IMG/VR virus record: IMGVR_UViG_3300017987_000001
Coordinates: 124,001-188,000 of that record
Length of the DNA stretch: 64,000 nt
Reading direction: 5' to 3' (one strand)
A model generated the notes under the pieces. It was given only the letters and a program-made list of their open reading frames with translations. It ran no database searches and had not been told where the DNA came from. A program made the translations under genes and the position numbers. Of the stretch, positions 1 through 21,816 are shown one piece after another; position 1 is the stretch's first letter, and each line of letters starts with the position of its first letter.

Positions 1-897
1 CTGCGAGATGCGCGTCGAGTAGACCGTCGAGGTCTCGTCATCTCCACGATTGTCGCGCACGACATAGCGATCACGCTGGAGGCGCTCCTTCTCGTCCTCG
101 CTCAGCATCGTGTCATCGAGATCGAGCACGTTCGCACGATCGGCGATCATGATCTGGACGTCGGGAGCCGTGTCCTCGATCATCTTGTCGCCGTCAGCCG
201 CCTTCTTCTCCATGGGTTCGGCGACAAAGGCTTCCTTCGCTGCTTCGAGGATAGCATCCATGTCGTAGATGCTGAGCAGACTGTCGGTGAATGCCGCGTT
301 CTTGCGCATCGTAGCGAGCAGCACACGTGCAGCGCTCCAGCCAGCATCCTTGATGAAGCTTGGGAGATCCCACTTGTCGCGCAGCGCCGCGCGCTTCTCG
401 CCGCCCGGGGGGCTCATGATGACGTGCAGGAAGGGCTTGAAGTCGTCGGCTATCGTGGAGGACAGGTAGTCCGTCAAGCCACGCAGCGACTGATCGCTCG
501 CATACTTCGACCCGGTGTACGGGGGCCGAGCCATCGCGTTGAAGTCGGGCTGCTGGATACCCATCTCGCCCGGCGTCATCTCCTCGGTCTCGCCGAGAAT
601 ATGCGGACGACGGTTGAGGAGGTAGTTGATCCAGTTCTCCTGCAGCGGAACGAAGGCGTCCTGACTCTTCAGGTAGAGCAGGTCGTCGCCCTTCAGCTGA
701 CCGTTGAGGAAGAAGACGGGGGCGTACATCCACTCGTCCCCGACGCTGAAGCCCCACACACCGACGGCGTGCGTGTTGTCTTCGCTCTTATCGAGGAGCT
801 GGAAACCTACCAGATGGTCCAGCAGGCCGGGCGCGCGGTCACGAAGGCGAGCGTGCGCGAGGTCAGCGAATGTTCGTTCGAATTCTGCATCTGGCAT
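1..897 (-). CDS. Large hypothetical protein, probable virion component (partial, runs off left edge)
   Basis: Manual translation from ATG 897 (RBS AAGGGGA): MPDAEFERTFADLAHARLRDRAPGLLDHLVGFQLLD..., open to position 1. Several KxA motifs (SKYAS, EKRAA, EKKAA). Not in the supplied ORF track. Confidence 0.75.
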   Translation of the reverse strand, partial: MPDAEFERTFADLAHARLRDRAPGLLDHLVGFQLLDKSEDNTHAVGVWGFSVGDEWMYAPVFFLNGQLKGDDLLYLKSQDAFVPLQENWINYLLNRRPHILGETEEMTPGEMGIQQPDFNAMARPPYTGSKYASDQSLRGLTDYLSSTIADDFKPFLHVIMSPPGGEKRAALRDKWDLPSFIKDAGWSAARVLLATMRKNAAFTDSLLSIYDMDAILEAAKEAFVAEPMEKKAADGDKMIEDTAPDVQIMIADRANVLDLDDTMLSEDEKERLQRDRYVVRDNRGDDETSTVYSTRISQ

Positions 898-949
898 TTC
901 AGATCCCCTTCGGCCAGCTAGTAGAGCGCGTAGCTACCCGCCAGCGTCC

Positions 950-1447
950 TTACGTGTACATCATCGTGTCTGTCGGCGACTTCCGACCCGGAAGCTGCGG
1001 CATCGGCATCTTCGTCTTCCCGCGTGTGGCTTCAGCGATGACCGACTCAGGCGCTTCATCGTAGCCCTCGTCGGGGAACATCTCCTTGCCCTGAGTGACG
1101 TTGGTCATCATCTTGTCGCGCGCCTTGAGGCCGCGCATCAGCTTCGCCATCGTCGGCATGAACGACATCTCTTCGAGCGGCATCCCCATACGACGACCCT
1201 GCTCCAGCTCGTGCTGCGAGAAGGTCGGCCGCTGCTGCTGACGATAGAGCCACGGGCGCACAGTCTCCGGAGCCTTGGAGAACCACTGCTTCACGGCTTC
1301 TTCTTCAGTCATCTCCGGCTCGGCGGGCTGCTGCGGCTGAGCGGTCTGCTGCGCAGCCTGATCCTTCTTACCGCCCCCGAACAGGCTCGAAATCAGTCCG
1401 AGCAACCATGTGCCGAGGTCGAAGCTTTCCTTTACGAGCGGCTCCAT
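950..1447 (-). CDS. Hypothetical protein (165 aa)
   Basis: ORF track; tightly packed in the minus-strand gene run with RBS (AAGGAG). Confidence 0.7.
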   Translation of the reverse strand: MEPLVKESFDLGTWLLGLISSLFGGGKKDQAAQQTAQPQQPAEPEMTEEEAVKQWFSKAPETVRPWLYRQQQRPTFSQHELEQGRRMGMPLEEMSFMPTMAKLMRGLKARDKMMTNVTQGKEMFPDEGYDEAPESVIAEATRGKTKMPMPQLPGRKSPTDTMMYT

Positions 1448-2347: not shown

Positions 2348-2349
2348 TC

Positions 2350-3618
2350 TCAGCTCCAGCCGCCCGAGGCGAGCATGCGCTTGACGAGGTTCTCGCGACC
2401 CTGACGACCGGCGATGCGCGAGGCCATCAGCTCCATCGCGCGATCCCACATGTCACGCTCGCCCCAGTTCCCAAAGCCTGCGTCCTGCGCGAACTGATCA
2501 TATGCCGACTGCTGCTGCTCGGGCGTCATCTCACCCGCACCGCGCGGCGCGAACGGCATCATTCCCATCCATGGGTTGCCGCGATTCATAGCAGCCATGT
2601 AGCCCATGAACTGAGGGTTGTATCCCTGATACAGCGGGTTCCACGACATAGGCATGTAGCCGCCTCGGCCTCCGCCGCCACCTGCGCCGGGGAAGATCTC
2701 TTCGAGGCCGGAGAGAACATCGCGCGCCTCTTCGGGAACCTGCTGCTCGGTAGCATACTGGCGAAGGCGGTGTGCAGCGTACGGTCCGTACTTGCGACCG
2801 ATCGCCTTCTCGATGCTTGTCCACTGCTCAGCGGTGTACTCGTTCTGTGCCAGCTCGCGCAAGCGATCGTCGAACGCCTGCATCCGCTGCTGATACGTCA
2901 TCTTGCCTGTGTCGATTGGCTTAGCAGCAGCTGCGGCAGGAGTAGTGGGAGCGGGTTTCGCTACAGGCGCCGGTGCTGCGCGCGGAGTCGGTCGTGGGGT
3001 CGGCTTTCTCGGAGGAAGCGTAATCCCCTTCTCCTTAGCTATCGACTCGACCTGCGACCGACCGGTGGACGGGCCGGATCGCTGCGGTGGTGCCGGTATC
3101 TGTGCTGGTGGTGCCGGTGTCTGTGCCGGTGGTGCCGGTGTCTGCACCGATGACTGTGCCGGTGTCTGTGCCGGTGTCTGTGCCGGTGCAGCACTTTCTG
3201 CATCAGTTGCAAGTCCGGCCGCAGTTGCCTCTCCGCCCGGCTGTGACTTTGTGGGAGGCACGGGCTTATTAGCGGGTTGAGCTAGCGACTCCCGAAGAAC
3301 GTAGTTAGCGGGACGACGCGCATCGGGCTCTACAACCCGCATATTGCGATTCTGTGCTAGCGTTGCTTCGAACTCTTCCGGTGTCGTTGGCTGGGCAGGC
3401 GCATTGTTGAACGTAAACTCTACAGGCGCATACTTCTTATTGAACGCGGCCTGCGAGCGCGCCGAAGCTGCTCTATTGGCTTCAGCCATTCGTCGTCGAC
3501 GCTCTTCAGCTTCCTGCTGCTGCCGTCGTATATCAGACAACGTATCCGAAATGCCTAGGCCAGCCTTCTTATGTAGGCCAAGTCTGCGTCCGAGTTCGAA
3601 AGCCAACTTCTGATCCAT
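2350..3618 (-). CDS. Putative internal virion protein with Pro/Ala/Gln/Thr linker (422 aa)
   Basis: ORF track; N-terminus MDQKLAFELG...HKKAG; RBS TAGGAG. Confidence 0.7.
   Translation of the reverse strand: MDQKLAFELGRRLGLHKKAGLGISDTLSDIRRQQQEAEERRRRMAEANRAASARSQAAFNKKYAPVEFTFNNAPAQPTTPEEFEATLAQNRNMRVVEPDARRPANYVLRESLAQPANKPVPPTKSQPGGEATAAGLATDAESAAPAQTPAQTPAQSSVQTPAPPAQTPAPPAQIPAPPQRSGPSTGRSQVESIAKEKGITLPPRKPTPRPTPRAAPAPVAKPAPTTPAAAAAKPIDTGKMTYQQRMQAFDDRLRELAQNEYTAEQWTSIEKAIGRKYGPYAAHRLRQYATEQQVPEEARDVLSGLEEIFPGAGGGGGRGGYMPMSWNPLYQGYNPQFMGYMAAMNRGNPWMGMMPFAPRGAGEMTPEQQQSAYDQFAQDAGFGNWGERDMWDRAMELMASRIAGRQGRENLVKRMLASGGWS
3085..3190. repeat. Coding tandem repeats (12 bp and 21 bp units, TGCCGGTGTCTG core) encoding PAQT / PAPPAQT
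   Basis: Direct reading of the repeats; no spacers. Confidence 0.85.
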
Positions 3619-3627: not shown

Positions 3628-5490
3628 CTAATACTTCGCCCCGGCCATCCCGTCGGGCTTAATCGGAGGCTTCCCGAACTCGGTCGTCTGCGCCAGCGAC
3701 GGAATGAACGATTCGCTGTGCTGCGCAGCTCCGAGGCCACGGTGCACCGATTGTAGCAGATTCTTTTTCAGATGGAAACCACCAAGTCGTACCATCCAAT
3801 CCTCGTTGTACCCCAGCGTCTCCATGGCGCGCACCATCTCCGGGGCGAACATCGGCTCGTCGGAGTGAGCCTTCACGGTCTTGAGTCCGCGCTTGTTGAT
3901 CTCAGCGGCAATGCGCGGCGTGATCTTCGTACCGATGGAGTACTGGAAGATCGGCTCCTCCAAGTACATGCCCACGGCACTCTTCGGTCGCATGGGCTTC
4001 GTACCCGTGCGCGGCTGATACTCGCGTGTGAGCGTGCTGAACTCTACCACATCATCGGGCAGCATGTCGGTGGTTCCGTCGGAGTCGACAATCCGTGCAT
4101 GGTTGATCAATCCGCGCGTCAGCAGCTCGATGTTCCGACGGTTCGCATCGATCTTGGTGGCCTTCAACGTGTTCCGGAAGTTGTTCATGAAGTGCCAGCG
4201 TCCGGCACCGATGCCCTTGTACTTCACAACCTCGGACGGGTTCGGCAAGCCTTCGCTCAATACGTCACCGGCCTCGATCTTGTCGCCGGGCACGACGGTC
4301 GGGTCGAACTCGGGCGCGACGTAGTGCTTCACGCCGCGCACGATAATGAAGTGACCGCCCTGCGGCGCTTTCTCGATGCCCTCGACAGTACCGTCGGTCT
4401 GCGCGATAGCCGCGCCGCCCATGAACGTACGTGGCACCTGAACGAGCTGGTTGATCGCATCGAAGCCGCCAGCGGTAGGACCAGCACCAACGACACCGCC
4501 GGTATGCTTCGAGGAGATAGCTGACTGCGTAATCGGCTCCGAGATAGCCTGTGCCGCTGCAACACCGACGTTGTCACCGATCTCGGGGAGCTTGCCCTTC
4601 TCGCGCACACCGACGCACCGGGCACACACACCATCGCGTGCCTGACACGTGAGCGGGCTGCGCACGATGATCTCTTTACCGTCACGCCCTATGCGCTTGG
4701 CTGCCTTCGTATCGATGATCGTATTCGCTTTGAAGCCCCCAGCGGGAGCTGCAAGGATCGAGCCAACGTTATCCGGGTCATCAGCGTCGACCGGGATGCC
4801 GTTGACCGTACCGCAATCATCCTCAGTGACGAGCAGCCGGTGAGATGCAAGCGCGAGCTGCTTGCCGAGAAAGCCGCCCTTCGGCGTGGCGAACTTGAGG
4901 TCGACCATGCCCTTTCGTGCCCCGTACGAGCCAGCCCAGTACTCGACTGGGTCCAGCCCCTCAGCGTACGAGTTGAGCAACGGGATCGGAACCGGGTTGC
5001 CTTTGTGGTCGGCCACGAGCAGGTCGCCGATGTTCGTCTGACTGAACTGAATCGGGTTGCCGCGTGCGCCGGAGTTGACCTGCATGGCGAGCGCGTTACG
5101 AAGGTCGAGCTGCTCTTGGAAGTTCAGTTTCCTAAGATCGTCGGCGCGCTTGCCGAGAAGTTTTATGACTCGCTCATTCTTTTGCTCATCGGTGAGCGGG
5201 GAGTTCAGAATCCTATTAACGCCACTACGTAGCTCGTCGCGAATCTTCTGTGCCTTCGGCCCTACAGTTAGAGAATCTAGGCTGATGGACGCCTCGCGGC
5301 CGTAGGTGGTAACCACCTCGGCCCCGAGGTCCATCATCTTCTTCGCGATCTCGTTGTACTGCTCCGGGTAGCGCTTCGCCACTTCGCGCAGGACCGTCTT
5401 GATCGTCTTCTTATTGATGGGACGATCGTAGTCCCGCATATCCGGCGGCAGGATGTCGTTGATCAGCAGTTGACCGACTGTAGTCTTCAC
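3628..5490 (-). CDS. rpoC: Multisubunit RNA polymerase beta' subunit, C-terminal half
   Basis: TTVGQ start, NSGARGN, bridge helix YGARKGMVD, EDDCGT, Zn site RSPLTC...CARC, trigger loop AAQAISEPITQ...KHTGG. Confidence 0.95.
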   Translation of the reverse strand: MKTTVGQLLINDILPPDMRDYDRPINKKTIKTVLREVAKRYPEQYNEIAKKMMDLGAEVVTTYGREASISLDSLTVGPKAQKIRDELRSGVNRILNSPLTDEQKNERVIKLLGKRADDLRKLNFQEQLDLRNALAMQVNSGARGNPIQFSQTNIGDLLVADHKGNPVPIPLLNSYAEGLDPVEYWAGSYGARKGMVDLKFATPKGGFLGKQLALASHRLLVTEDDCGTVNGIPVDADDPDNVGSILAAPAGGFKANTIIDTKAAKRIGRDGKEIIVRSPLTCQARDGVCARCVGVREKGKLPEIGDNVGVAAAQAISEPITQSAISSKHTGGVVGAGPTAGGFDAINQLVQVPRTFMGGAAIAQTDGTVEGIEKAPQGGHFIIVRGVKHYVAPEFDPTVVPGDKIEAGDVLSEGLPNPSEVVKYKGIGAGRWHFMNNFRNTLKATKIDANRRNIELLTRGLINHARIVDSDGTTDMLPDDVVEFSTLTREYQPRTGTKPMRPKSAVGMYLEEPIFQYSIGTKITPRIAAEINKRGLKTVKAHSDEPMFAPEMVRAMETLGYNEDWMVRLGGFHLKKNLLQSVHRGLGAAQHSESFIPSLAQTTEFGKPPIKPDGMAGAKY

Positions 5491-5494
5491 CGGC

Positions 5495-6658: not shown

Positions 6659-8152
6659 TTATACCGCTGGTGCCTTCTTCTTCGGAGGCTGCCCGGGCAA
6701 CGGCTCAGTCTTGGTTGGAGCAGGAGGCTGTTCGACATTGGCGCTCGCCGTAGCTGTATCACCCTGCGGCGCCTGCTCCGTCTCGGCTACCTGCGGCTTC
6801 TGCGGATCCTGCTGCTGTGTCGTTGGTTGAATCCAGTCAGTGCCTGCGGGCTGATTCACGCCCCACATATGCCCGCCCGGCGACTGGATCTGAATCGAAC
6901 CGCCTTCGGCCATCGTTCGGTTCGCCAAATCTTGGAAGCTGCGCTGGAACTTCTGCTCACGCTGCGCCACGGTCGAAGGCTGTGCAGGCTGTTGCGGCGG
7001 ACGCGCAACCGGCTGACGGCTGATTCCGCGCGTGCCCGCGCCCTGCCGCCCACGTCGAGAGCGCGGGGCGTAGCGTCCAGAGGTGAAGCCACTGTACGTA
7101 TGCCCTGCGGACTGACGCGGACCAACAAGCTCTTCATTCAGTCGACGCTGCTCGGTGGTTACATCGCGCGCGAAGTTGACGAGATCACCCATGCCGCCTT
7201 CGAGCTGGCTCGGGCCGCCCTCAGTCATGCGACGACTCGCTGCAGCGATCTGGCCGGGGCGGAAACGAATGCCTGCGCGAGCGAACAGCTGCTGCAGCGC
7301 ATCGCGGCGCTGGCCGTGCCGGTGCACCGCACGCACGGCCTCTTCACTGAAGCCTAGTCGCTTTGCTTCCTCATTCATGTGCTGAATGGTCTGCTCGCGC
7401 GTCGGAGGCTTCGGGCGAGTATCAGCGAACGGAGCGTCGGTCTTGGTGCGCTCCGTCGTAGTCGGCGCGGGATCACTGACCTGCACCGTCGAGCCCATCT
7501 CGCCGCCCTCGCCACCGCCGGAGAGCTTCTTGGCCTTCGCTTCGGCGGTAGCAACGTCGGTCGGCGCTTCGTCTGCCGCCGGTGTCGTCGTCGGCGGTGC
7601 TTCCGTAGAGTCAAGCGCGCCGTTGTACTGCGACTGGCCAGACTCCTCGTTCAATCGCTTCGCCTCTTCGAGCGAGGGTGCAACCTTGAACGTCTTTCCT
7701 GCCTCACTGGGCATACCATACGAATCGACGAAGCTCTGCGTAACCCAAACGATGTTCTCGGCGTGCGGGTTGATCGATTCGCCGCGCGCCATACGCCCCT
7801 GATTGAGTACTCCAAGGATCTGATCGATCGGAGCAGCTCCTTCTTCTTCAGCGGTCTTCTGGCGCTGCGCGAACCCGGCAGCGGCGTCGCTCTTCTCCTT
7901 GGCAAGCAGATTCTGTGGTGCCCACGAGCCACTCGTCGGTGCGCCATTCTCAGCGCGCTTGCACAGAAACTCACCGGCGGTCTTCACCTGCTGCTCGCGA
8001 TCGTTGAGAACCATCGACGCCACGATCTGCGCACCCGGTACTTCTGGCATAAGTAAGAGGTTGGCGAGCGAGAGCGCATCGTCGGTGTCGTAACCGGCGG
8101 ACTTGCAGAAGCGCAGCACGCCTGCGGTGAATGCCTGCTTACGTTCCATCAT
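6659..8152 (-). CDS. Putative internal virion protein, low complexity
   Basis: Start at MMERKQAF (RBS GGAGG); KQAF, KSAG, KTAG, KRAE motifs in the N-terminal region. Confidence 0.7.
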   Translation of the reverse strand: MMERKQAFTAGVLRFCKSAGYDTDDALSLANLLLMPEVPGAQIVASMVLNDREQQVKTAGEFLCKRAENGAPTSGSWAPQNLLAKEKSDAAAGFAQRQKTAEEEGAAPIDQILGVLNQGRMARGESINPHAENIVWVTQSFVDSYGMPSEAGKTFKVAPSLEEAKRLNEESGQSQYNGALDSTEAPPTTTPAADEAPTDVATAEAKAKKLSGGGEGGEMGSTVQVSDPAPTTTERTKTDAPFADTRPKPPTREQTIQHMNEEAKRLGFSEEAVRAVHRHGQRRDALQQLFARAGIRFRPGQIAAASRRMTEGGPSQLEGGMGDLVNFARDVTTEQRRLNEELVGPRQSAGHTYSGFTSGRYAPRSRRGRQGAGTRGISRQPVARPPQQPAQPSTVAQREQKFQRSFQDLANRTMAEGGSIQIQSPGGHMWGVNQPAGTDWIQPTTQQQDPQKPQVAETEQAPQGDTATASANVEQPPAPTKTEPLPGQPPKKKAPAV

Positions 8153-8369
8153 TGACGACCTCCGTCCGAGCCAGCTTGTCGACGCCATAGCGCTTGATGA
8201 CATCGTGGAACTTCTCATCGGAGCAGGTCGTGACGAGAACGTGGTCGGGGCTGACCTGCTCGATCGCAGCGATCGGCTGTCCGAAATTGTCGCGCACGAT
8301 CAGCCACGTCACGCTGCAGTCGAGCACGCGGCCATTGAGTACGCTGCCAATCTGGTAGGTCACCTGCAT
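8139..8369 (-). CDS. Small hypothetical protein (76 aa)
   Basis: ORF track; ATG directly follows the upstream TAG. Confidence 0.65.
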   Translation of the reverse strand: MQVTYQIGSVLNGRVLDCSVTWLIVRDNFGQPIAAIEQVSPDHVLVTTCSDEKFHDVIKRYGVDKLARTEVVNDGT

Positions 8370-9353: not shown

Positions 9354-9366
9354 GTCATGCGTCCTT

Positions 9367-14400: not shown

Positions 14401-16925
14401 TCTTTGCCCTTGCGCGCAAGCTCGCCGGGGAATGCGATGATGCTCTTGGCCATCTTGCTGGCGCTGATGCGGCGCGGCTTGCCGGTCTTCGCGTCGAGCA
14501 TGTCAACGTAGATGTTCCCGTCCGAACCCTTGTACGTCCGGTGCGTGATGCGGCTGTCAACACCAATCTTCATGCCTTCGGGCGCACGAATGGGGTCGAT
14601 CACGCCGAAGTGCGACGGCTGCACGGCACGCGCTTCGTCGGGAACAGCGTCGAGACCGGGCATTCCGCCCTCACCCATGCGGGTGACGCGCACGAGCTGG
14701 TCGAAGATCTCAAGCGGGTTCACCTCTTCGAGCGGAGCTGCGAGACCGCTCTTGAGCAGCACAAGTCGAAGCTGCGGCGAGAGCGCGCCCGCCGGGAACT
14801 TCGAGACGTTGCCCTTGTTGGTAGCACGCCACAGCAGCTTACGGGACATGCCGCCAGCGTCACGGGCGATACGCTCGGCGAAGAGATCCTCGGGGCCGAA
14901 CACGCGCTGAAATGCGAGCGAGTCGCGATCGTCCGTATCCGCCTTGCGCTGGTTGATGTCGATGAGCTTCTTCGTGACTTCGGCGATCACTTCGGGCGAC
15001 AGCTTGTCGATCTTGCGGCCAAGCGTCATCTCGGTCGTGTCGGGGTCAACTTCCATCTTCTCGAAGACACCACGCATCTGAAGACCCATGTCATCATCCG
15101 CGCGCTTCTCCATCGCTGCGTCACGCCCCACGAACTGCACGAACGCGCGCTTGATCTCGTCGACCGGCAGCATGGCCTTCAGCTCTTCGAGCGTGGTGAA
15201 GCGGCGCGGAAGCGTCTTCTCCTTCTTCACGGCTTTGAGCTGCTTCTCGACCTTCGCCTGATCGGCCGCCGGGTTGCCCTTGATGTCCTGATTGGCCTGC
15301 TGCTGACGCTCGATCAGCTGCATCGGCTCTTCGTTCTCCATCATCTCTTCGGCGGGCATCGACATGTCGACAACATCGGCGAGCTTCGTCGCCATCGCGC
15401 TCTTGACGAGCGTGTCGGAGATCGCTTCCTCAATCGCGTTCGTCACGGCAAGGAACGCGTTGGCCGTCTTCTCCTCGACGCCGTCGAACAGCGCTGCGAT
15501 CTTCGAAGCGCCACGCGGCTGCTTCTTGGGCTTCACGGCGACGGTGATGTGGAACTGGAACTCCTTGCCGCTGTCATCGCCGCGCGGAAGCTCCTCGAAT
15601 CCGAGCGACTTGCGATGAGCACGCAGCTCGGGCGACTTCGCTTCGAGGAACCATACGCGATCCATCTCATCCCAGCCCTCGGGGTCGAGATCGACGATGG
15701 CGTTCTGCAAACTGAAGGGGAACTTGCGGCCATTACCGCATGCGGTCTTCCACTTCTTGCCGTACTTCCCGATCAGCTGCTTCGCTTCCCAGTTGCGCAG
15801 AACGCTGATGTGCGGGAGATCGAAGCGCGACTCGCAGTCGACGTCCTGATCCTTCAGCGCCTGATACGCAGCCTCGGGCAGTCCCTTGTGGATCTTGAGG
15901 TACGCCCACGGCTTGTCCGAATCCGAATCGTCGCATACCAGCTCGCCGACGAACTTCGCGCGGCGGCGGTTACCTTCCTCGTCCTCCTGCGCAGCCTTGG
16001 CGAACTTGAACTCGCTGCCCACCCAGAGCATGCACCAGCCGGTCGGCGCGACGAAGCCCTGCACCCGGCGGCACGCGTTGACGCCGTTGAAGTTCTTGCA
16101 GCTGGAGCACTGCTGGAAGAATCCCGACATCGTGTAGTTCACGTCGCCCTTGGAGGTCTTGCCGTAGCCGACGTGCTCCTCGGAGTAGCCAAAGAACGCT
16201 GCCTTCTCGGTAGCGTCGGTGTCCTGCTGCTCGGGAGGGGTCTCCTCGGGCTTCTTCGAAACAAGCTTGTGATACGCGCGCTGAACGGCACGCGGGTCGG
16301 ACGCAGCAACGTTCGCCTGCAGCAGGTCCGGTCCCCACGTCTCGTTGAGCTTGCGGTCGTCGTAACCCATCGAGCGAAGGATCGGATAGAGCTTGAGGTT
16401 CGCCTGCCCGACGTTCATGCGGAAGACGCCGGTCTCCGGCTCCATGTAGACCCTGAAGCTGCGCCCCGTGCCACCCTTGACGTTAAAGTGGGCCTCGATG
16501 ATGCCGTTGTCCTTAACTCGACTGTAGATGCCGGGGCGCAGCCTCATTTGGGACGCTACGGTATACTCGTTGCCGTTGAAGACGAACGTACCACGATCGG
16601 TGAGATACGGAACCTGAGCGATGAGCCGTTGGTTAGTCTTGTCGACAATCTTGCCGGATGCGTTATCGACAAGTTCCCACCGACCAGCGAGCTTCCATCC
16701 GAGCGTCTGGCCGCGCATGATCGCCCGCTTCTGCTCGGAGTTGGTGTACTGCTTCGGCTTCACGTACTTCACGTCGTTCAGCCGCAGCGTGTAGCGCTGG
16801 TTCGTCATCGGGAAGCGCTCTTCGATCGCCTTCTGCACGTTCGTGAACAGAAGCTGGCGCGTCGAGCGCACGTCGTCGAACTCACGCATCGTAGGTTCGT
16901 TGGGAGCAGCGATTACGTCGGCCAT
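11427..16925 (-). CDS. rpoBC: Multisubunit RNA polymerase: beta fused to N-terminal half of beta', with a ~370 aa internal insertion
   Basis: beta motifs GTFVFNG, HFGVIDPIRAPEG, RLLMGAKM, GYNADD, GDKLSNRYGGKG, YMMKLHH. beta' motifs VPVLPPNFRP, NRAPVLH and catalytic NADFDGD. Confidence 0.97.
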   Translation of the reverse strand: MADVIAAPNEPTMREFDDVRSTRQLLFTNVQKAIEERFPMTNQRYTLRLNDVKYVKPKQYTNSEQKRAIMRGQTLGWKLAGRWELVDNASGKIVDKTNQRLIAQVPYLTDRGTFVFNGNEYTVASQMRLRPGIYSRVKDNGIIEAHFNVKGGTGRSFRVYMEPETGVFRMNVGQANLKLYPILRSMGYDDRKLNETWGPDLLQANVAASDPRAVQRAYHKLVSKKPEETPPEQQDTDATEKAAFFGYSEEHVGYGKTSKGDVNYTMSGFFQQCSSCKNFNGVNACRRVQGFVAPTGWCMLWVGSEFKFAKAAQEDEEGNRRRAKFVGELVCDDSDSDKPWAYLKIHKGLPEAAYQALKDQDVDCESRFDLPHISVLRNWEAKQLIGKYGKKWKTACGNGRKFPFSLQNAIVDLDPEGWDEMDRVWFLEAKSPELRAHRKSLGFEELPRGDDSGKEFQFHITVAVKPKKQPRGASKIAALFDGVEEKTANAFLAVTNAIEEAISDTLVKSAMATKLADVVDMSMPAEEMMENEEPMQLIERQQQANQDIKGNPAADQAKVEKQLKAVKKEKTLPRRFTTLEELKAMLPVDEIKRAFVQFVGRDAAMEKRADDDMGLQMRGVFEKMEVDPDTTEMTLGRKIDKLSPEVIAEVTKKLIDINQRKADTDDRDSLAFQRVFGPEDLFAERIARDAGGMSRKLLWRATNKGNVSKFPAGALSPQLRLVLLKSGLAAPLEEVNPLEIFDQLVRVTRMGEGGMPGLDAVPDEARAVQPSHFGVIDPIRAPEGMKIGVDSRITHRTYKGSDGNIYVDMLDAKTGKPRRISASKMAKSIIAFPGELARKGKEVRAMIRGKKLAYVKRKDVDFELPHTSHMFTATANMVPMVSAIKGGRLLMGAKMATQALPLRNAEAPLVQNLADDGSGRSFEEIYGDRAGAVRAEGMGSVAEITKDKVVVRYADGEKVSYDLYNNFPFNRKTYLHNTPVVRVGDPVAPGQLLARSNFTDDTGAVASGMNLKVAYLPYRGYNADDALVLSESAAKRLASEHMYTTKYQQSDNQEAGKKSYMSIYPGTFDKQQMSTIDDNGVVKIGTKVKFGDPLVLSISKRKPSGGGMLRARKTLYSDASETWDHESEGVVTDVDKTKEGWKVIVKAYSPMHVGDKLSNRYGGKGVISKIIPDDQMPHDKDGKPFDITLSSLGIVSRINPAQLIETALGKIAKKTGVPYKLPGFMDESYVTLAKKELQKHGMSDTEDIHDPVSGRKIPKVFTGYTYMMKLHHMAEPKLSGRDIGSYTAEGMPAGGGQEGSKRIGVGEMMALISHGATDVIRDAKLVRGQRNDDFWRALRLGYTPASPKVPMIYDKFLSMLQASGINLKKKGEQLHLFAMTDKDIDKMSAGPIKKNDTVTGDAMEPVKGGLFDVGLTGGHGGTRWSHIDLAEPIPNPVMEEPIRRMLGLTQNKLERIIAGRDDLNGERGSKAILSALKRIKVDDAIEHYSSQVREATGAKRDNAVKVLGYLRTLKQAGQKPSDLMLTKVPVLPPNFRPITTFNKTTFVDDPNYLYADLMSVNDDLRELRNDLGDDELGDERLRLYKAYKAVTGLGDPVAAKTQEKQVGGLLRHIFGSSPKLGMYQQKVLGAAVDTVGRGVITPNPSLGMDQVGLPESKAWVLYRPFVMRNLVRRGMGAMAAAKAIENQDQVAYKALLEETGRRPVIINRAPVLHRYGMMAAWPIITKGNTLQIPPIVTPGFNADFDGDAMNFHVPVSKAAVEEAVDKMMPSRNLLAASDFDVHYFPRQEFLHGLYLASTAKDKRVKTFMSKADVLRAYKRGELRVGDSVQFGK
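15520..15960 (-). other. 2H phosphoesterase-like domain inserted in RNAP beta
   Basis: Two H-x-[ST]-hydrophobic motifs: PHISVL (H372) and FHITVAV (H459), 87 aa apart. Confidence 0.75.
16023..16146 (-). other. HiPIP-like 4-Cys (putative Fe-S) domain inserted in RNAP beta
   Basis: CSSC-x8-C-x11-WC-x2-W (..PTGWCMLW) matches the HiPIP cysteine spacing. Confidence 0.65.
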
Positions 16926-18016
16926 CAGATCGGCTCCTCCGCGATTGTCTCTTTCTCGCCCGGATCTTTACGGTACGCCACAAGCGGCGTCGGTGTGGCA
17001 AGTGCGCGCCGCTTGAGCAGCCGCTCCAGTGTCTGCGAACGCTTGCGTCCTTCGTCATGCTTCTTCGCGTAACGCCACGCGCCTGCACCGGCCGCGCCGG
17101 TCAGCATCATCAGGCTGAGCAGGTAGAGTCCGGCAATCCCGCTTCCGGCTCCGGTCCACGGCCCCGGTGTCGTAGCCTCGACCGGATCACCCCAGCCTTC
17201 GCCATTAGCCTTCTTCTGCATGATCTCGGCAATCTTCGTGAAGTTGCCGCGCGAGAAGATATCGGCGAGATGGTCGACCCGCTCGGCGAGACTCGCGACC
17301 TTCTGGCCACTGTACTCGGATTCGAGCGCTTTCTGGAACTCTTCTTCTGCCTGCGCACGCTCGCGCTCGATGCGCTTCTTGCGTAGTTCGTCGTAGTGCT
17401 TGCCCGCGAAGTGCGACGTGAGTCCAGCTGCAGTGATCGGCAAGCCGACAAGCATCGACGCGCCGAGCGGATGGGTGATCGGATTGTCGGTGGGTTGGAA
17501 GAGATTCCCGAGCGCGCCCTTGAGATCCATGCCGCCGAGCAGGTTCTTGACGTACTTGTAGATCAGCGGCGACATCAGCGCGCCGCCCGCAAGTGCGATC
17601 GGCAAGCCGTAGCCCGCTTCCTTCTCGCTCGCGGCTTTGATGGGTACTTCAAGCTCCTGCTTCGGGAGCTTCAGCTTCGCGCCCGCTCGCTCGGTATCGA
17701 GATACTCGGTCATGAGCTTCTTGCGTCGCTTCTCGGCCTTCTCGAAGCTTCGCTTCTTCAGTGCAGCCACGAGTGCAACCGCCGGTATGCCGAGCAGAGC
17801 ACCGCCGCCGACGGCCTTCAGGAAGCTGCGCCAGCCCACGGGCATTCCACCGATGTCGCCACCGAGCCCCTCGACCTCCTTCGCGAGGTCGCCGCTGGCG
17901 CTGAAGCGGTCAACAACGTCGTCGAGACTGAGTTCGGCCTCCTTCAGCATCTCATCGCTGATAGGGGCACCCTCGGTCTCGGACGCCTGCTTGATTGCGA
18001 GTGCAAGCTGTCCCAT
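16925..18016 (-). CDS. Putative virion/ejection protein with four Gly/Ala-rich hydrophobic segments
   Basis: Start at MGQLAL; hydrophobic segments alternate with basic helices; KQAS, KEAG, KVAS, KIAE, KKAN motifs. Confidence 0.7.
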   Translation of the reverse strand: MGQLALAIKQASETEGAPISDEMLKEAELSLDDVVDRFSASGDLAKEVEGLGGDIGGMPVGWRSFLKAVGGGALLGIPAVALVAALKKRSFEKAEKRRKKLMTEYLDTERAGAKLKLPKQELEVPIKAASEKEAGYGLPIALAGGALMSPLIYKYVKNLLGGMDLKGALGNLFQPTDNPITHPLGASMLVGLPITAAGLTSHFAGKHYDELRKKRIERERAQAEEEFQKALESEYSGQKVASLAERVDHLADIFSRGNFTKIAEIMQKKANGEGWGDPVEATTPGPWTGAGSGIAGLYLLSLMMLTGAAGAGAWRYAKKHDEGRKRSQTLERLLKRRALATPTPLVAYRKDPGEKETIAEEPI

Positions 18017-18017
18017 A

Positions 18018-18374
18018 TCAGAACCCTCTCTGCGGGTTGTACACATACAGATCGGCCCACCGCAGGAAGACACGCCAGTTCTTCGTCTCCGGATCGTACT
18101 CCCGGTCCTCAGCAGAGATGACTGCATGCCCGTTGGAGTACATCGTGTAGATGTCCGCCATGCGCTTGCGATCCTTCTCGTCACTCATATCGAGAATCTC
18201 GACGTGAGCACGCACGCCCTGCTTGGGCTGCATATGATCGGGATCGTCGTTCTTCAGGTCGGGCACATGGCCACGGAACGGGAGACCGTCCATGCCCGGA
18301 AGAATCGCGGGCATGTCGCGCTGCCCATTGGATGGATCGATCAGCTTGCCGTCGATATCCCAGCGATCAGCCAT
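18018..18374 (-). CDS. Hypothetical protein (118 aa)
   Basis: ORF track; tightly packed in the operon. Confidence 0.7.
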   Translation of the reverse strand: MADRWDIDGKLIDPSNGQRDMPAILPGMDGLPFRGHVPDLKNDDPDHMQPKQGVRAHVEILDMSDEKDRKRMADIYTMYSNGHAVISAEDREYDPETKNWRVFLRWADLYVYNPQRGF

Positions 18375-19831
18375 CAGATCTCCACCCCTCCTGCGGTCAT
18401 CGGAAGAATCTTGTTGTGCGCGTCGTCGGGCTGCGTCTCACCCTCTGCCTCGCGCTCCTGCGGCTGATTCTTCTTCGCACGGCGTTCAGCCTGCCGCGTG
18501 AGCCGCTTGTAGAGCGCCATGCGCTCAACGTGCCGCAGCTCTTCCGGATCAAGCGTAGGCTCCCGAGAGAGCGAGTATGCGGCGGTCGAAGCACCGGCAC
18601 CTAGGAGCGGAATGCCTGCAGTGGGGATGAGAAACGTGAGTATGGCGAGGTTCTTCGCCAATCCCCCTCCCTGCCGGATGATCTCCGCGAGTGCACTCGT
18701 TTGCGCCGCCTTCTCCAGCGCGCCATCGAGTTCGCTCGGCCGGATACCCGCCTCGGCGAACTTCTCGTAGAAGCCGTACTTGAACGCATTCTTCTTCAGC
18801 TTCTCGACGTCACGATCCTTGCGCTCCTTGTTCTCCGTGTGCTTCTTCGTTCCTTCGCCGACCGCCTCGATCTTCCCCTCGTCGACAGCGTCTTCCATAC
18901 CCTTTTCGAGATCGTCGAGTCGCGGCTCGTAGTAATCGTCTCCCTCTGTGAGGTGATCTTTCGCAATCTCCTGTGCCACTGCCGGATTGCTCGTGTGCTC
19001 AAGCTCTACTTCGGTGCCCTTCTCGATCTGAGCCTTCGGGAACATCGACGTGGGCATACCGGCGGCGAGTCCGCCGGGAATCACGTCGTCCTTGCCACCA
19101 ACGAGCTTGGCGAGGAGGCGATAGATCTCCTCCTCCGCCTCATGCTCGTCGACGCCGAGTGACTCTGCTTGCTGGTGGAAGCCCTCGTCGTCGATACCCT
19201 GTCCCATCTGCGTGATGTAGTTCACGAGCTGCTGTAGGATCTCGGGCGGCAGCGACTCTTCAGCCTCGTGCTCGGGCGATTCGATCTCGCCTTCCTCGTG
19301 CTCTTCGCTTTCATCCCCGTTGGCACTCTTCACGACGTACTCGACGAAGCTCTGCATCTTCGGCATGCCGCTGATGCCCTGCAGCGCCTGTGCGAGCGAC
19401 GGAGCTGGCTGCGACGGCCCATTGAGGCCAAGCAGATTGCTGGGCGCTTCGGGCGTGCCGGGAGCGGCCGGTCCCATAGCCGACGGGTTGCCGCCCTCTT
19501 CGACGACCTTCTCCTCAGGCGTGCGGTGAAGCCCGGGGTAGCGCAGCTCTTCGATCATGCGCCGCCGACGATCGGCCTTCTCGGCCTCGTTCTTCTGAGC
19601 AATAGCCTGCAGAAGCGGAGCTTTCTCCATAACCGTGCGGAAGTCCTGCCCCTTCAGCGCTTCGAGCGCGTCGATGCCGATGCCCTTCTGATCGAGCTTC
19701 CTCATGCGCTCGGTCATCGTAGGCGTGGGCATGCCGCTCATCGGCTGGACGCCGGGTAGCCCCGGCATACCTGCGCCGATGTTCGCCTGCTTGAGGTGAT
19801 TTTTGAACGCGTCCAACAATCTCTGGGGCAT
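18374..19831 (-). CDS. Acidic putative virion protein with DUF5661-like segment and C-terminal TM
   Basis: KGTEVELEHTSNPAVAQEIAKDHLTEGDDYY resembles DUF5661; KQAN, KSAN, KNAF, KAAQ motifs. Confidence 0.7.
   Translation of the reverse strand: MPQRLLDAFKNHLKQANIGAGMPGLPGVQPMSGMPTPTMTERMRKLDQKGIGIDALEALKGQDFRTVMEKAPLLQAIAQKNEAEKADRRRRMIEELRYPGLHRTPEEKVVEEGGNPSAMGPAAPGTPEAPSNLLGLNGPSQPAPSLAQALQGISGMPKMQSFVEYVVKSANGDESEEHEEGEIESPEHEAEESLPPEILQQLVNYITQMGQGIDDEGFHQQAESLGVDEHEAEEEIYRLLAKLVGGKDDVIPGGLAAGMPTSMFPKAQIEKGTEVELEHTSNPAVAQEIAKDHLTEGDDYYEPRLDDLEKGMEDAVDEGKIEAVGEGTKKHTENKERKDRDVEKLKKNAFKYGFYEKFAEAGIRPSELDGALEKAAQTSALAEIIRQGGGLAKNLAILTFLIPTAGIPLLGAGASTAAYSLSREPTLDPEELRHVERMALYKRLTRQAERRAKKNQPQEREAEGETQPDDAHNKILPMTAGGVEI
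19799..19820. promoter_or_regulatory. 22 bp palindrome copy 2 (ATTTTTGAACGCGTCCAACAAT)
   Basis: Consensus match; intragenic. Confidence 0.7.
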
Positions 19832-19842
19832 GGGGCTGCTCC

Positions 19843-21816
19843 CTATCGCATGAATGGGCTACCGGGGGACTGCGCTGCGGGCGCTCCCCGGAAGTAGCCC
19901 ATGATACTCGAAATCGTGTCGAGAATGTTGCCCGTATCTCGGATTGACTGCGGCTTCGTGCCGAGCAGCATACTCAGCAGATTCTCTCTGAGACCGAACG
20001 GCTTCGCGGGCGCCGGGCCGCCCATCCAATGCGGCTTCGCCGGAGAGCCGCCGCCCATCCACGCAGGCTTCTGTGGTCCGCCACCGCCGAGCAGCCCACC
20101 AAGGAACGCCTGCTTCAGCAGCCCAGCCGATTCGTGGACCTTGTCCCAATCGACCGAAGCTGCATGCTCGAAAATGGATTGTAGTATCGTGATCTTCCCG
20201 GTCTTGGGGTTCATGTAGATGTCCCCAGCCTCTGGGTTCTCTGGGTCAAGCGGTCCCAATCGAATCGAATCTTCTTCATCGTCATCAAAGCGATGCGCTC
20301 CTGCATCGACTGCGCGTTGATCTTCTTTCCACTGCTCTTCATCCTCGTCGGGTTCCTTCTTAGAGAATGGCCAGAGCGCTTCCTTCAACAGGATGCCTGC
20401 GTAGTCGGATGCTTTCCTCATGTCTGGATAGTCCTCGTGAATGGAGATCAGTCCGGGCGCGCGGTACGCCCCACTCGGGAACTGACCCTGTGCCTTGATC
20501 CGAGCAATCCGACCAAGGAACTCCTCCGGGTTCTTCAGCATTGCCCGCCGAAGATCCTCGGAGAATCCCGTTCCTACTTTACCAACTGCGGGGCCGTCAG
20601 GCGAGAGCGAATACTCGAAGCCGCCCGCTCCGACGCCCTCCAACCGCTTCTCGCCGGGGAAGATGTCCTTCACGAACACGTCGTGCTCGTCGTACAGCTT
20701 GACCTTCGCGGGCTTGCCGCCCTTCTTCGGCCACGCTACAATGCCCTCATGAGTAAGCGGATCACGCCCACCCTTGACATCCTCCCACAGAGCACGCTGT
20801 TCTTCCGGGGTCTCGGCCATTCGTGGGAGATGGAACTTGCCTTCAGGCAGATGCTTGAGGATTTCGCGGACCTTATCAAGGCGCTCGGCAATCGGGACGT
20901 CCATGCCGATGGGCTTCTTGCCGTACTTCAGGATATTGAAGATTGCATTGCGGAGCTGAACGCCCTGCTCGCGCTGCTTCTTCAGCGATTTGCGCGTCGA
21001 GGAGTTAAGAATCCCACCCAGTTCTTGGGGAGGGATGGCACGATCATCACGCGTACCGTAGAGTTCCCCACGGAGAATTGATCCCACGAGATGCTTGGGG
21101 ATGTTGAGGCCAGTAGTTCCTCCAACTCGGTAGGTGTGGACAATAGGTCGGCCAGTCGTTGTCGGCCGGTATGAGAGAACATCGATCTTATCCGAGAATA
21201 GCTTGTAGAGGGCTGCTGCTCCATCGATCTTCTCCATGTGGAGGTACTTCTCGTCGAAGAGCTTCTCCACGTCCTCGGCCGGAACCTTGGCGTACCGAAC
21301 CTTCTTGTGCTTGATGACCTCCGTGGGCGTCGTGTTGATCATCAGCCACGAGCCGCCCTGCGTCTTCTTCGTACGCGGCGAGCCGCCGGTGGGCGGTCCG
21401 CTCTTGCGTATCATCGTGTACATCTCTGGGTGCTTCTTGTGCGTGACCACGAAGTTGATCTTGTTCGGCTCGACCTTCGTGACCAGCACCGTGCCTTTGT
21501 CGTGCGTCTTCACCAGCCCCTTGCCGTAGCCCGACGTTATTTCGCCCTCGAAATTCGCGTAGGCTCCGGTGTGAAGCGGTTGTTGGAATGCTAAAACTTT
21601 CTGCCCCGACTCCTCGGGGAGTTTGCGTGATGCCCAACTGAGAAGTGATGGCTTGCCGCCTAGGTTTGGTCCGAACCGAATATCGTAGTGCGGCCCAGCT
21701 CGGTCAGCTAGGTGGCGCTGGATCACATACAGAAGCTCACGGCCCTTCGGGAGATCCGTAACGCTCCCGAAGCGCCGTGGGTCTGGTAGGCCCGGCGCGA
21801 ACTCAGTCTTGGCCAC
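19843..21816 (-). CDS. LigD-type 3'-phosphoesterase domain fused to ATP-dependent DNA ligase, plus KxA-bounded tail
   Basis: PE motifs IQRH...HYDIRF, H..YANFEG...GYGKG. Ligase motifs EKIDG, GELY, EGIV, KVK and OB-fold GKVGTGF. Confidence 0.88.
   Translation of the reverse strand: MAKTEFAPGLPDPRRFGSVTDLPKGRELLYVIQRHLADRAGPHYDIRFGPNLGGKPSLLSWASRKLPEESGQKVLAFQQPLHTGAYANFEGEITSGYGKGLVKTHDKGTVLVTKVEPNKINFVVTHKKHPEMYTMIRKSGPPTGGSPRTKKTQGGSWLMINTTPTEVIKHKKVRYAKVPAEDVEKLFDEKYLHMEKIDGAAALYKLFSDKIDVLSYRPTTTGRPIVHTYRVGGTTGLNIPKHLVGSILRGELYGTRDDRAIPPQELGGILNSSTRKSLKKQREQGVQLRNAIFNILKYGKKPIGMDVPIAERLDKVREILKHLPEGKFHLPRMAETPEEQRALWEDVKGGRDPLTHEGIVAWPKKGGKPAKVKLYDEHDVFVKDIFPGEKRLEGVGAGGFEYSLSPDGPAVGKVGTGFSEDLRRAMLKNPEEFLGRIARIKAQGQFPSGAYRAPGLISIHEDYPDMRKASDYAGILLKEALWPFSKKEPDEDEEQWKEDQRAVDAGAHRFDDDEEDSIRLGPLDPENPEAGDIYMNPKTGKITILQSIFEHAASVDWDKVHESAGLLKQAFLGGLLGGGGPQKPAWMGGGSPAKPHWMGGPAPAKPFGLRENLLSMLLGTKPQSIRDTGNILDTISSIMGYFRGAPAAQSPGSPFMR

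Follow-up and report, generated by a model that had tools for sequence, protein, structure and literature searches.

A predicted Lys-x-Ala cleavage code for the head-maturation protease of an uncultured jumbo phage and its relatives

Do the Lys-x-Ala (K-x-A, here KxA) tripeptides that recur in the predicted proteins at one end of a jumbo phage sequence mark the sites at which a head-maturation protease cuts? The question arose in the window, the whole 64,000-nucleotide stretch analyzed here (positions 124,001 to 188,000 of IMG/VR record IMGVR_UViG_3300017987_000001), which belongs to a roughly 208-kb contig of an uncultured phage. The preliminary description noted that KxA recurs in most of the larger ORFs of 1-21.8 kb, often at domain boundaries, and proposed that it is the prohead-protease site of this lineage. 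Every listed peptide was found on the minus strand in the ORF to which it had been assigned, including DKRAS (36752-36766) and EKKAS, and the features of the region are collected in the table.

Table. Features of the window and their KxA content. Arrows indicate the point after the Ala.
Position	Strand	Feature	KxA, observed vs expected	Sites
1..897	-	N-terminal 299 aa of a 780-aa head/structural protein (full gene L086:10037-12379); homologue of Arash gp218, which was detected in Arash virions	7 vs 1.5 (window part)	Extended-motif site MEKKA↓A at 199-207
2350..3618	-	422-aa ORF of unknown function	4 vs 2.4, not significant on its own	N-terminus MDQKLA↓FELGRRLGLHKKA↓G
3628..5490	-	Phage multisubunit RNA polymerase beta' C-terminal subunit (Rpb1 domains 4 and 5); orthologue of Arash gp216, an abundant virion protein	4 vs 3.7, no excess	
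6659..8218	-	519-aa fast-evolving ORF	7 vs 2.8	Clustered in the first 125 residues (KQA↓F, KSA↓G, KTA↓G, KRA↓E, KTA↓E); the first two shared with the only orthologue (L007)
8631..9404	-	257-aa Ala-rich ORF		Residues 26, 38 and 242
9618..10310	-	230-aa ORF		KRA↓C (residue 16), KQA↓K (46), extended-motif site MEKKA↓I at 10149-10157
10384..11316	-	310-aa fast-evolving protein just downstream of the RNA polymerase fusion gene	10 vs 4.7	10951-10959, K-x-A in all 8 orthologues (x = E, M, S, V, L, A), preceded by [L/M/I]-[E/T]; 10786-10794, conserved in 6 of 6
11427..16925	-	1832-aa fusion of RNA polymerase beta and the beta' N-terminal part, with a ~620-aa N-terminal extension; orthologue of Arash gp206, the most abundant protein in Arash virions	19 observed, 12 in residues 1-620	Conserved in all orthologues that cover them: 16722-16730, 16197-16205, 15990-15998, 15462-15470, 15378-15386, 15144-15152 and 15099-15107 (MEKRA↓D)
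16925..18016	-	~363-aa protein with one TM-like segment; likely true start is the ATG at 18016, directly after the upstream stop	8 vs 3.7 (ORF 16925-18184)	11-residue leader MGQLALAIKQA↓S (KQA at 17984-17992), conserved in 5 of 5 orthologues as M-G-x-h-A-x-h-h-K-x-A; second conserved site KEA↓G at 17615-17623
18374..19831	-	485-aa protein with a weak DUF5661 hit and one TM-like segment		Leader MPQRLLDAFKNHLKQA↓N (KQA at 19784-19792); KFA↓E at 18755-18763, conserved in 3 of 3 orthologues; extended-motif site LEKAA↓Q at 18704-18712
19843..21816	-	657-aa protein with a LigD-type 3'-phosphoesterase domain, a ligase-like region and a Gly-rich tail; syntenic in relatives; upper edge of the region	4 vs 4.0, no excess	
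33903..36677	-	Portal protein, 29% identical to the Arash portal gp204, with a ~320-aa intein-like insert; anchors the head-gene context on the minus strand		
36885..37607	-	240-aa ORF upstream of the portal	2 observed, no excess shown	EKKA↓S (37350-37364) and a KQA↓P site

The enrichment itself is real. The 17 minus-strand ORFs of 1-21816 (7128 aa) hold 78 KxA, whereas 48.8 are expected from whole-protein shuffles (z 4.7-4.9) and 49.7-50.7 from shuffles within 40-, 20- or 10-residue blocks (z 4.1-4.5), and KxA ranks 1 of 318 X-x-Y pairs. By contrast, KA (49 vs 48.8), KxxA (37 vs 48.3) and KxxxA (39 vs 49.0) are not enriched, and in 21.8-64 kb KxA is 74 vs 63.6 (z 1.4, rank 48 of 394). The signal is at the protein level, as AAR-NNN-GCN is enriched only in frame (78 vs 48.5), with a z of about -1 in the other two frames. 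Notably, only about 28 of the 78 sites are excess, so most individual examples could be chance, and many of those listed in the preliminary description are probably background. The excess is carried by 1-897, 6659-8218, 10384-11316, 16925-18184 and the first 620 residues of 11427-16925, whereas ORFs 950-1447, 1457-2449, 3628-5490, 5881-6762 and 19843-21816 show none. The location at domain boundaries could be checked directly only for the protease outside the window, where it holds. The region is also not a classic virion module, as had been assumed, but holds a virion-RNA-polymerase cluster with fast-evolving accessory genes.

The strongest signal lies outside the window. In the head module of the same contig beyond the window, KxA is 74 vs 44.3 (z 5.2, rank 1 of 284); a 389-aa homologue of Arash gp220 has 17 vs 5.5, the candidate protease 9 vs 2.9, an Ala-rich 458-aa scaffold-like protein 15 vs 6.6, and the capsid protein exactly one site. 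The same pattern was observed in two cultured relatives: in Salmonella phage Arash, the head module gives z 4.1, against z 0.3 for tail/baseplate and z -1.5 for early genes, and in Vibrio phage D181 the head module has 51 vs 22.5 (z 6.9, rank 1), against 4 vs 9.8 in downstream genes. Relatives with only 27-32% RNA polymerase identity show no enrichment. Pooled over the three lineages, KxA is 178 vs 88.9 (z 10.6), whereas RxA (43 vs 56.4), KxS (34 vs 47.5) and KxG (36 vs 60.7) are depleted, and 23 of 36 head proteins have a KxA in their first 40 residues, against 10.2 expected. As a control of the method, the same blind scan of phage T4 head genes ranked IxE 1st and LxE 3rd of 219, recovering the known I/L-x-E code, and T4 non-head genes showed nothing.

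The motif is longer than KxA, roughly G-[L/M]-[E/V]-K-x-A followed by A or S: L/M occupies P5 in 83 of the 178 pooled sites, with E at P4, G at P6 and A/S at P1'. The extended motif [LMIV][EDQTV]KxA is 24 vs 1.4 in Arash, 25 vs 1.6 in D181, 16 vs 2.7 in the head module of our phage, 10 vs 3.0 in window 1-21.8 kb and 3 vs 4.0 in the rest of the window. A matrix trained only on Arash and D181 separated our head-module sites from the KxA sites of window 21.8-64 kb (P 1e-8), although inside the window the flanking-context signal is weak (P 0.03 against the rest of the window). Conservation points in the same direction. KxA pairs are co-conserved 2.6 times more than the product of single-residue conservation, which is not the case for KA, KxxA and KxxxA, and in fast-evolving orthologue families the sites sit in conserved alignment columns with a free x. 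The single capsid site is present in 119 of 121 homologues including Arash (identity 1.00 for K, 0.40 for x and 0.97 for A) and lies exactly where a variable leader meets the conserved body, the leader being 0.40 identical and the next 20 residues 0.80.

A candidate protease, which had not been seen in the window, was found about 10.4-11.9 kb beyond window position 1 on the same contig and strand (L087:12018-13487), five genes upstream of the capsid gene. Of 35 members of this 489-aa protein family, 12 hit the head-maturation-protease family phrog_18299 (best E 4.9e-7). The model of the N-terminal domain has a pLDDT of 90 and gave 109 BFVD matches at E <= 1e-3, many of them named prohead protease, COG3740 or XkdF; however, this predicted fold is matched by predicted viral structures only, no solved structure matched significantly, and sequence searches against the PDB found nothing. 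H117 and S168 are invariant. KxA at 33-35 (34 of 35 members) and at 237-239 (35 of 35, P1' Ser in 27) lie in segments with pLDDT below 50, and both are shared with Arash, D181 and phage G gp19. A few conserved KxA lie inside folded parts, such as protease 158-160 in a helix, so not every conserved KxA need be a site.

Enrichment, conservation in orthologues and the finding of a protease, three of the tests that had been suggested, thus came out positive, and we propose, as the probable explanation, that KxA is the core of a recognition motif after whose Ala the phage's own prohead serine protease cuts. By analogy with T4, phiKZ and herpesviruses, we infer that the enzyme is built into the prohead through its helical C-terminal half, frees itself at its own KxA sites (after residues 35, 239 and ~445), removes a 23-residue leader from the capsid protein, chops the Ala-rich scaffold-like proteins into short peptides, and trims N-terminal leaders of 10-35 residues from proteins packed in the head. 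In this view, 1-21.8 kb encodes part of the packed cargo, namely the two virion RNA polymerase subunits and fast-evolving accessory proteins, and its KxA excess reflects substrate sites diluted by roughly 50 chance occurrences. This would be a new cleavage rule, but both cleavage and its position after the Ala remain inferences, since no cleavage has been observed, no virion proteome exists for this uncultured phage, and the Arash study included no semi-specific search and no peptide list. Table 2 of that study lists high coverage for gp223 and gp206, which at face value would mean uncleaved or retained segments, although the figures are hard to interpret because 100% is reported for proteins with only 2 unique peptides.

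Other readings appear less likely. KxA with its flanks might be a docking or targeting motif, read by a scaffold, portal or capsid-interior surface to recruit cargo without cleavage at that position; the restriction of the enrichment to head-internal proteins, the frequent sites near N-termini and the span of about 7 residues, as in short linear binding motifs, fit this possibility as well. We regard it as unlikely, though it is the foremost of the alternatives, because the sites occur up to 17 times in one protein and also in the protease's own disordered linkers on both sides of the catalytic domain, because the sharp drop in conservation N-terminal to the capsid site is as expected for a discarded propeptide, and because side chains read two positions apart, at P3 and P1, mirror known prohead-protease codes. 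The absolute requirement for Lys, with Arg not tolerated, would also suit chemical modification or cross-linking of lysines inside the head, for example by acylation, methylation or isopeptide bonds, with Ala at +2 as part of the modifying enzyme's site. This seems improbable, as no candidate modifying enzyme was seen in the head module, where the protease is the only enzyme, and the positions at the ends of N-terminal leaders, in linkers around the protease domain and in dense arrays in scaffold-like proteins fit cutting better.

It is likewise doubtful that the sites are cut by another enzyme, such as a second phage protease or a host protease. The identity of the 489-aa protein rests on fold and weak profile matches only, and only about 40 kb of the 208-kb contig outside the window was inspected; nevertheless, the protein sits in the canonical place between the portal-side genes and the scaffold and capsid genes, has the invariant His and Ser, and itself carries the best-conserved KxA sites, as self-processing prohead proteases do. 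Least likely of all is a by-product of composition, low complexity or paralogy. Several carriers are indeed Ala- and Lys-rich (10384-11316 and the 458-aa scaffold-like protein), and two window ORFs share a similar N-terminal K-x-A-F ... K-x-A-G arrangement, but this reading is already disfavored by the ten-residue block shuffles, which keep z above 4 in the window and above 5 in the head module, the lack of enrichment at spacings of 1, 3 and 4 or in out-of-frame codons, the depletion of RxA, KxS and KxG, and the recurrence of the signal in three lineages with ~30% protein identity.

Among known systems, the T4 prohead protease gp21 with its (L/I)-x-E code is similar in that one head-assembly protease trims the capsid protein, degrades scaffold proteins and probably removes short N-terminal, capsid-targeting leaders from packaged internal proteins, and in that the code is defined at P3 and P1. 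Here, however, P1 is Ala instead of Glu and P3 is Lys instead of Leu/Ile, there are extra preferences at P6-P4 and P1', and no sequence similarity to gp21 was detected. The giant-phage proteases phiKZ gp175 and SPN3US gp245 belong to jumbo phages that package a virion RNA polymerase and many ejection proteins, with many head proteins processed at a three-residue motif, multiple motifs inside propeptides and self-cleavage of the protease (PMC10052503). Their code differs, cleavage following A/S/G-x-E (AXE), probably in phiKZ as well, and so does the RNA polymerase lineage, that of our phage having a beta/beta'-N fusion with Arash and D181 as the nearest cultured phages at ~30% identity.

Herpesvirus assemblin (HSV-1 UL26 type) cuts at Ala-Ser release and maturational sites (PMC2949831 describes the R/M site layout of UL26), and the P1 Ala, the frequent P1' Ser and the order of protease domain, self-cleavage site and scaffold-like C-terminal part with a further site near its end are shared, here as K-V-A↓S after residue 239 and a KxA around residues 443-451 of 489. 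P3 is Lys here, against what is probably a hydrophobic residue in herpesviruses, and the only structural hint to assemblin was non-significant (EBV protease, E 0.34 with the full-length model, absent from the top 50 with the domain model). The predicted fold of residues 34-240 matches many viral proteins named as HK97 gp4-type prohead serine proteases (COG3740, XkdF-like), with the His-then-Ser order at ~50-residue spacing and the gene next to the scaffold and capsid genes, but there is no Pfam hit, PHROG hits are only weak, and the protein also has an invariant four-Cys cluster and a 250-residue helical C-terminal extension.

The best named structural match is gp19 of Bacillus megaphage G, annotated as head maturation protease in a paper that reports no cleavage motif (PMC12484599), with a Foldseek E of 1e-13 and a tblastn hit at E 2e-8. 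The phage G capsid protein gp27 has no KxA, and module-wide enrichment is modest (22 vs 13.4, z 2.6, rank 2). Both protease-flanking KxA sites align with those of gp19, and gp19 itself (8 vs 2.5) and its neighbors gp21 (7 vs 2.8) and gp7 (14 vs 7.3) are KxA-rich.

The window has a G+C content of 60%, spans positions 124001-188000 of a 207,857-bp metagenomic contig (IMGVR_UViG_3300017987_000001 = Ga0180431_10000020), and carries nearly all its genes on the minus strand. Read in the direction of transcription, from high to low coordinates, a family-A DNA polymerase fragment and unknown small genes are followed by a 240-aa ORF, the portal gene, an island of sugar-nucleotide enzymes and methyltransferases, and finally the 1-21.8 kb region. 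Although this last region was regarded as a virion module in the preliminary description, it is not a classic one: it contains a LigD-type phosphoesterase/ligase-like protein, three conserved proteins of unknown function, a fusion of RNA polymerase beta with the N-terminal part of beta', seven fast-evolving small ORFs, the beta' C-terminal subunit, three more ORFs and the start of a structural protein. In Salmonella phage Arash, the nearest cultured relative (~30% identity), the two polymerase proteins are among the most abundant virion proteins, and the homologue of the 780-aa structural protein is also detected in virions; the region is thus a virion-RNA-polymerase cluster, that is, cargo of the head. 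PHROGs and Pfam searches of the 1-21.8 kb region and of the downstream module returned nothing for most ORFs, and a megablast search of phage genomes with the polymerase gene gave no match.

Coordinates of the features discussed, with K-x-A counts for some of them (L087, continuation of the same contig past window position 1; L008 and L010, sequences carrying orthologues of the polymerase fusion; L089, Vibrio phage D181)
Feature	Location	Strand	Size	KxA observed vs expected
Family-A DNA polymerase fragment and unknown small genes	window 38-64 kb			
Portal protein with intein-like insert	window 33903-36677	-	924 aa	
Island of sugar-nucleotide enzymes, methyltransferases and a sulfotransferase	window 21843-33866	-	12 kb	20 vs 21.2
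LigD-type phosphoesterase/ligase-like protein	window 19843-21816	-	657 aa	
Conserved protein	window 18374-19831	-		
Conserved protein (16925-18184 as first called)	window 16925-18016	-		
RNA polymerase beta/beta'-N fusion	window 11427-16925	-	1832 aa	
Orthologue of the fusion in L008	L008:6141-12722		2194 aa	
Orthologue of the fusion in L010	L010:9884-18013		2710 aa	
Fast-evolving family	window 10384-11316			
Pair of neighbouring ORFs	window 5881-6762 / 6659-8218	-		
RNA polymerase beta' C-terminal subunit	window 3628-5490			
Pair of neighbouring ORFs	window 1457-2449 / 2350-3618	-		
Start of a structural protein	window 1-897		780 aa (whole protein)	
Arash-gp220 homologue			389 aa	17 vs 5.5
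Predicted prohead protease	L087:12018-13487		489 aa	9 vs 2.9
Ala-rich scaffold-like protein			458 aa	15 vs 6.6
ORF	L087:14935-15303		122 aa	7 vs 2.7
Capsid protein	L087:15935-16849		304 aa	exactly one site
ORF	L087:16910-17254		114 aa	5 vs 2.0
Genes downstream of the D181 capsid gene	L089:24717-32566			4 vs 9.8

The polymerase fusion bears a ~620-aa N-terminal extension with a weak 2H phosphoesterase hit at residues 366-467, and its orthologues in L008 and L010 carry large inserts, probably inteins, that split the BLAST alignment. The portal protein, which is 29% identical to that of Arash, is considerably longer than the 579-aa Arash protein; the extra ~320 residues lie at about residues 110-430 and give a weak Intein_splicing hit. 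The LigD-type protein combines a LigD 3'-phosphoesterase domain, an ATP-dependent-ligase-like region and a Gly-rich C-terminal tail, and is syntenic next to the polymerase cluster in L008, L010 and L014. The island between the portal and the polymerase cluster encodes two NAD-dependent epimerases/dehydratases, a UDP-glucose/GDP-mannose dehydrogenase, several methyltransferases (one FkbM-type), a sulfotransferase-like protein and a GT9-like protein. The conserved proteins at 16925 and 18374 both have one TM-like hydrophobic segment and a conserved basic C-terminus, which is odd for head cargo, and they might be membrane-active ejection proteins. The two pairs of neighbouring ORFs overlap by about 100 nt when called from the first start codon; these are probably start-codon over-extensions, as shown for the 16925-18184 ORF, whose likely start is at 18016.

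The K-x-A peptides listed in the preliminary description, which had proposed K-x-A as a candidate maturation-protease code, were all found at their positions. The 17 ORFs of 1-21.8 kb contain 78 KxA against 48.8 expected (z 4.7-4.9); when shuffles were confined to 40-, 20- or 10-residue blocks, the expectation remained at 49.7-50.7 and z at 4.1-4.5, and co-localised Lys- and Ala-rich segments therefore do not explain the excess. Among all X-x-Y pairs with enough counts, KxA ranks first of 318, whereas KA, KxxA and KxxxA are at or below expectation, and the rest of the window gives 74 vs 63.6. At the DNA level only the in-frame pattern is enriched, which led us to reject a DNA-level signal. Notably, the excess amounts to about 28 sites and comes from a subset of ORFs, several large ORFs having none, so that most single in-window occurrences cannot be told from chance.

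To replicate this observation on sequence that had not been seen when the motif was proposed, we walked down the contig past window position 1 (L086 and L087) and found the head-assembly genes by homology to Arash, namely, homologues of gp219-gp222 and the capsid protein (31% identical to Arash gp226). In these 18 proteins, KxA is 74 vs 44.3 (z 5.2), again first of 284 pairs and again only at spacing 2. Close metagenomic relatives (60-77% polymerase identity) show the excess too (298 vs 215). In Arash, the excess is confined to the portal-to-capsid block (73 vs 46.2, z 4.1; gp220 10 vs 3.0, gp223 8 vs 3.2, gp225 7 vs 1.8), and terminase/tail/baseplate genes (z 0.3) and early genes (z -1.5) lack it. 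In D181, the head block has 51 vs 22.5 (z 6.9, first of all pairs), while the genes after the capsid gene hold fewer KxA than expected (z -2.0). Jumbo phages with only 27-32% polymerase identity show no excess; many distant jumbo phages, like the Arash early genes, sit at z of about -1 to -2, which suggests a mild general under-representation of KxA outside head proteins.

Pooling the three head modules (10,921 aa) gives 178 vs 88.9 (z 10.6). The motif is strict, in that RxA, KxS and KxG are depleted, and a generic basic-x-small motif was accordingly rejected. The flanks are also informative: L or M sits at P5 in 83 of 178 sites, E or V at P4 and G at P6; P1' is Ala in 44 and Ser in 38 of the 178 sites, both enriched; and G, F and L are avoided at P2. 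The extended pattern [LMIV][EDQTV]KxA occurs 24 times vs 1.4 expected in the Arash head, 25 vs 1.6 in the D181 head, 16 vs 2.7 in our head module, 10 vs 3.0 in window 1-21.8 kb and 3 vs 4.0 in window 21.8-64 kb, and [LM]EKxA occurs 5 times in 1-21.8 kb (0.4 expected) and never in 21.8-64 kb. A position matrix trained only on Arash and D181 flanks separates our head-module sites from the KxA sites of window 21.8-64 kb (P 1e-8) but separates the sites of the 1-21.8 kb region only weakly (P 0.03), as is expected if about two thirds of in-window sites are chance; we therefore do not call individual in-window sites real unless they are conserved or match the extended motif. Twenty-three of 36 head-module proteins have a KxA within their first 40 residues, against 10.2 expected, and no shuffle out of 2000 reached 23.

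In the fast-evolving families of the window (25-40% identity), KxA sits in fixed columns while x and the surroundings vary. In the 10384 family, one site is K-x-A in all eight orthologues (x = E, M, S, V, L, A), preceded by [L/M/I]-[E/T], and a second is conserved in six of six; the 16925 family starts with an 11-residue leader M-G-x-h-A-x-h-h-K-x-A in five of five members; and the N-terminal 620 residues of the polymerase fusion hold seven sites conserved in all orthologues that cover them. Across the non-polymerase families, the joint conservation of K and A at spacing 2 is 0.378, which is 2.6 times the product of the single-residue values, as compared with 0.14-0.24 for spacings 1, 3 and 4. 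More distant relatives from IMG/VR (L003-L005, 42-49% polymerase identity) lack most of the small ORFs of the window and were of no use for this comparison. The capsid protein family has over 1900 homologues, and among the top 120 examined, the single K-x-A, at residues 21-23, occupies the same column in 119 of 121 sequences, including Arash. K is 1.00 identical, x 0.40 and A 0.97, and the 19 leader residues before the site are 0.40 identical and the 20 after it 0.80, which is the signature of a propeptide boundary.

The preliminary description noted that no protease gene was seen in the window; a candidate lies 10.4-11.9 kb beyond window position 1. The protein is homologous to Arash gp222 and D181_0277 and belongs to a family of more than 370 metagenomic proteins without a Pfam domain. 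The gene order is protease, Ala-rich 458-aa protein, three small ORFs and capsid protein, and this order is the same in Arash (gp222 ... gp226) and D181. Profile support is limited: the query itself scores E 0.005 against phrog_18299 (head maturation protease), and 12 of 35 family members match it, with a best E of 4.9e-7. An AF2 model of residues 34-240 (pLDDT 90.3, pTM 0.83) matched 109 predicted viral structures in BFVD at E <= 1e-3 by Foldseek; many of these are named prohead protease, COG3740 or XkdF, and the top named hit is phage G gp19, which is annotated as a head-maturation protease (PMC12484599). By contrast, no solved structure matched significantly with either the full-length or the domain model, the top PDB matches being MCE-domain barrels at E of 0.03 or above and EBV protease at E 0.34, and PDB sequence searches with the protease and with its family profile gave no hits; we therefore do not claim an assemblin fold from solved structures. 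H117 and S168 are invariant in 35 family members with 38-87% identity to the first sequence and also align in Arash gp222, D181_0277 and phage G gp19, although their assignment as catalytic residues is by position only. The protease domain also has an invariant four-Cys cluster (C171, C178, C181, C192, plus H194) that looks like a metal site, and some homologues (P0008, P0010, P0011, P0021, P0057 and others) are 850-890 aa long with intein/Hint-type Pfam hits.

Intriguingly, the protease family itself carries KxA at 33-35 (34 of 35 members), 158-160 (31 of 35) and 237-239 (35 of 35, followed by Ser in 27), and often at 278, 284, 443 and 449. The sites at 33-35, 237-239 and 443-445 fall in the only long low-confidence segments of the full-length model (pLDDT below 50), and the first two align with KxA in Arash, D181 and phage G. 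The resulting layout of leader, site, protease domain, site, helical C-terminal half and a site near the end resembles self-processing prohead proteases and the herpesvirus UL26 arrangement (PMC2949831), although the presence of the motif is not proof of cutting. As a control for the method, the same blind scan on T4 genes 68, 21, 22, 23 and 24 ranked IxE first (22 vs 9.0) and LxE third (21 vs 10.9) of 219 pairs, and T4 non-head genes showed neither; this statistic thus recovers an experimentally established protease code.

Taken together, we consider it probable that G-[L/M]-[E/V]-K-x-A|[A/S] is the cleavage motif of the prohead protease of this lineage, in which case the excess in the window reflects processing sites in packaged cargo: the N-terminal extension of the polymerase, the 10384, 16925 and 18374 families, the 6659 ORF and the 780-aa protein. 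In the absence of peptide-level evidence, both cleavage itself and its position after Ala remain inferences, the latter resting on analogy with x-x-E| and x-x-A|S codes and on the A/S preference at the next position; the coverage values published for Arash virion proteins are not usable as evidence for or against cleavage. Some conserved KxA lie in folded regions, so that not every conserved KxA need be a site. A docking motif that is not cleaved is the least improbable alternative but appears unlikely. We regard as more remote still the possibilities that a different protease acts on the same sites, that the lysines are modified, or that composition or paralogy produced the excess, local composition in particular being disfavoured by the block shuffles in both the window and the head module.

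The proposed motif works like the T4 (L/I-x-E) and phiKZ/SPN3US (A-x-E; PMC10052503) codes in being over-represented in head proteins and not in other proteins of the same phage, but it lacks their defining Glu at P1 (ExA 83 vs 96.7 and KxE 40 vs 55.1) and is thus not the same code. With herpesvirus assemblin it may share Ala at P1, which follows only from the definition of the motif, but it does not share the hydrophobic P3, since P3 is Lys and LxA, IxA and VxA are not enriched (99 vs 111.7, 50 vs 52.1 and 75 vs 77.1). We found no description of a Lys-x-Ala phage maturation motif in the searchable literature, and the Arash and phage G papers do not address cleavage. Prohead-protease codes are known from experiments for only a few phages; where one is known, it allows the proteins that enter the head, the ends of their propeptides and the content of the mature virion to be read from sequence alone. 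A K-x-A code, if confirmed, would add a chemically different specificity with a basic P3 and a small P1, would assign a role as packaged and processed head cargo to a block of orphan genes around a virion RNA polymerase, and would apply to a clade that is common in metagenomes. Because the blind scan of all X-x-Y pairs in head genes against shuffles recovers the T4 code, it could also be used to predict protease codes in other uncultured phages.

More tentatively, we speculate that a large, widespread clade of ~175-210-kb phages that package their own RNA polymerase, including the cultured phages Arash and D181 and with phage G as a distant relative, uses a previously undescribed maturation code, G-[L/M]-E-K-x-A|[A/S], read by a divergent, Cys-cluster-bearing prohead protease. 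The motif would then work as a sequence-only tag for the whole packaged and ejected proteome, including the orphan proteins of the window and the 620-residue N-terminal extension of the polymerase fusion, which would be cut into pieces at its seven conserved sites. In Bacillus phage G (L090, genes 7-28), gp7, gp19 and gp21 are KxA-rich, but the capsid protein gp27 has no KxA, and the code may therefore extend only partly to this phage. In a more distant relative (L003 / L015, the same 33-kb contig), a different pair, G-x-T, is strongly over-represented (114 vs 63, z 7.1), which points to a Gly-x-Thr repeat protein.
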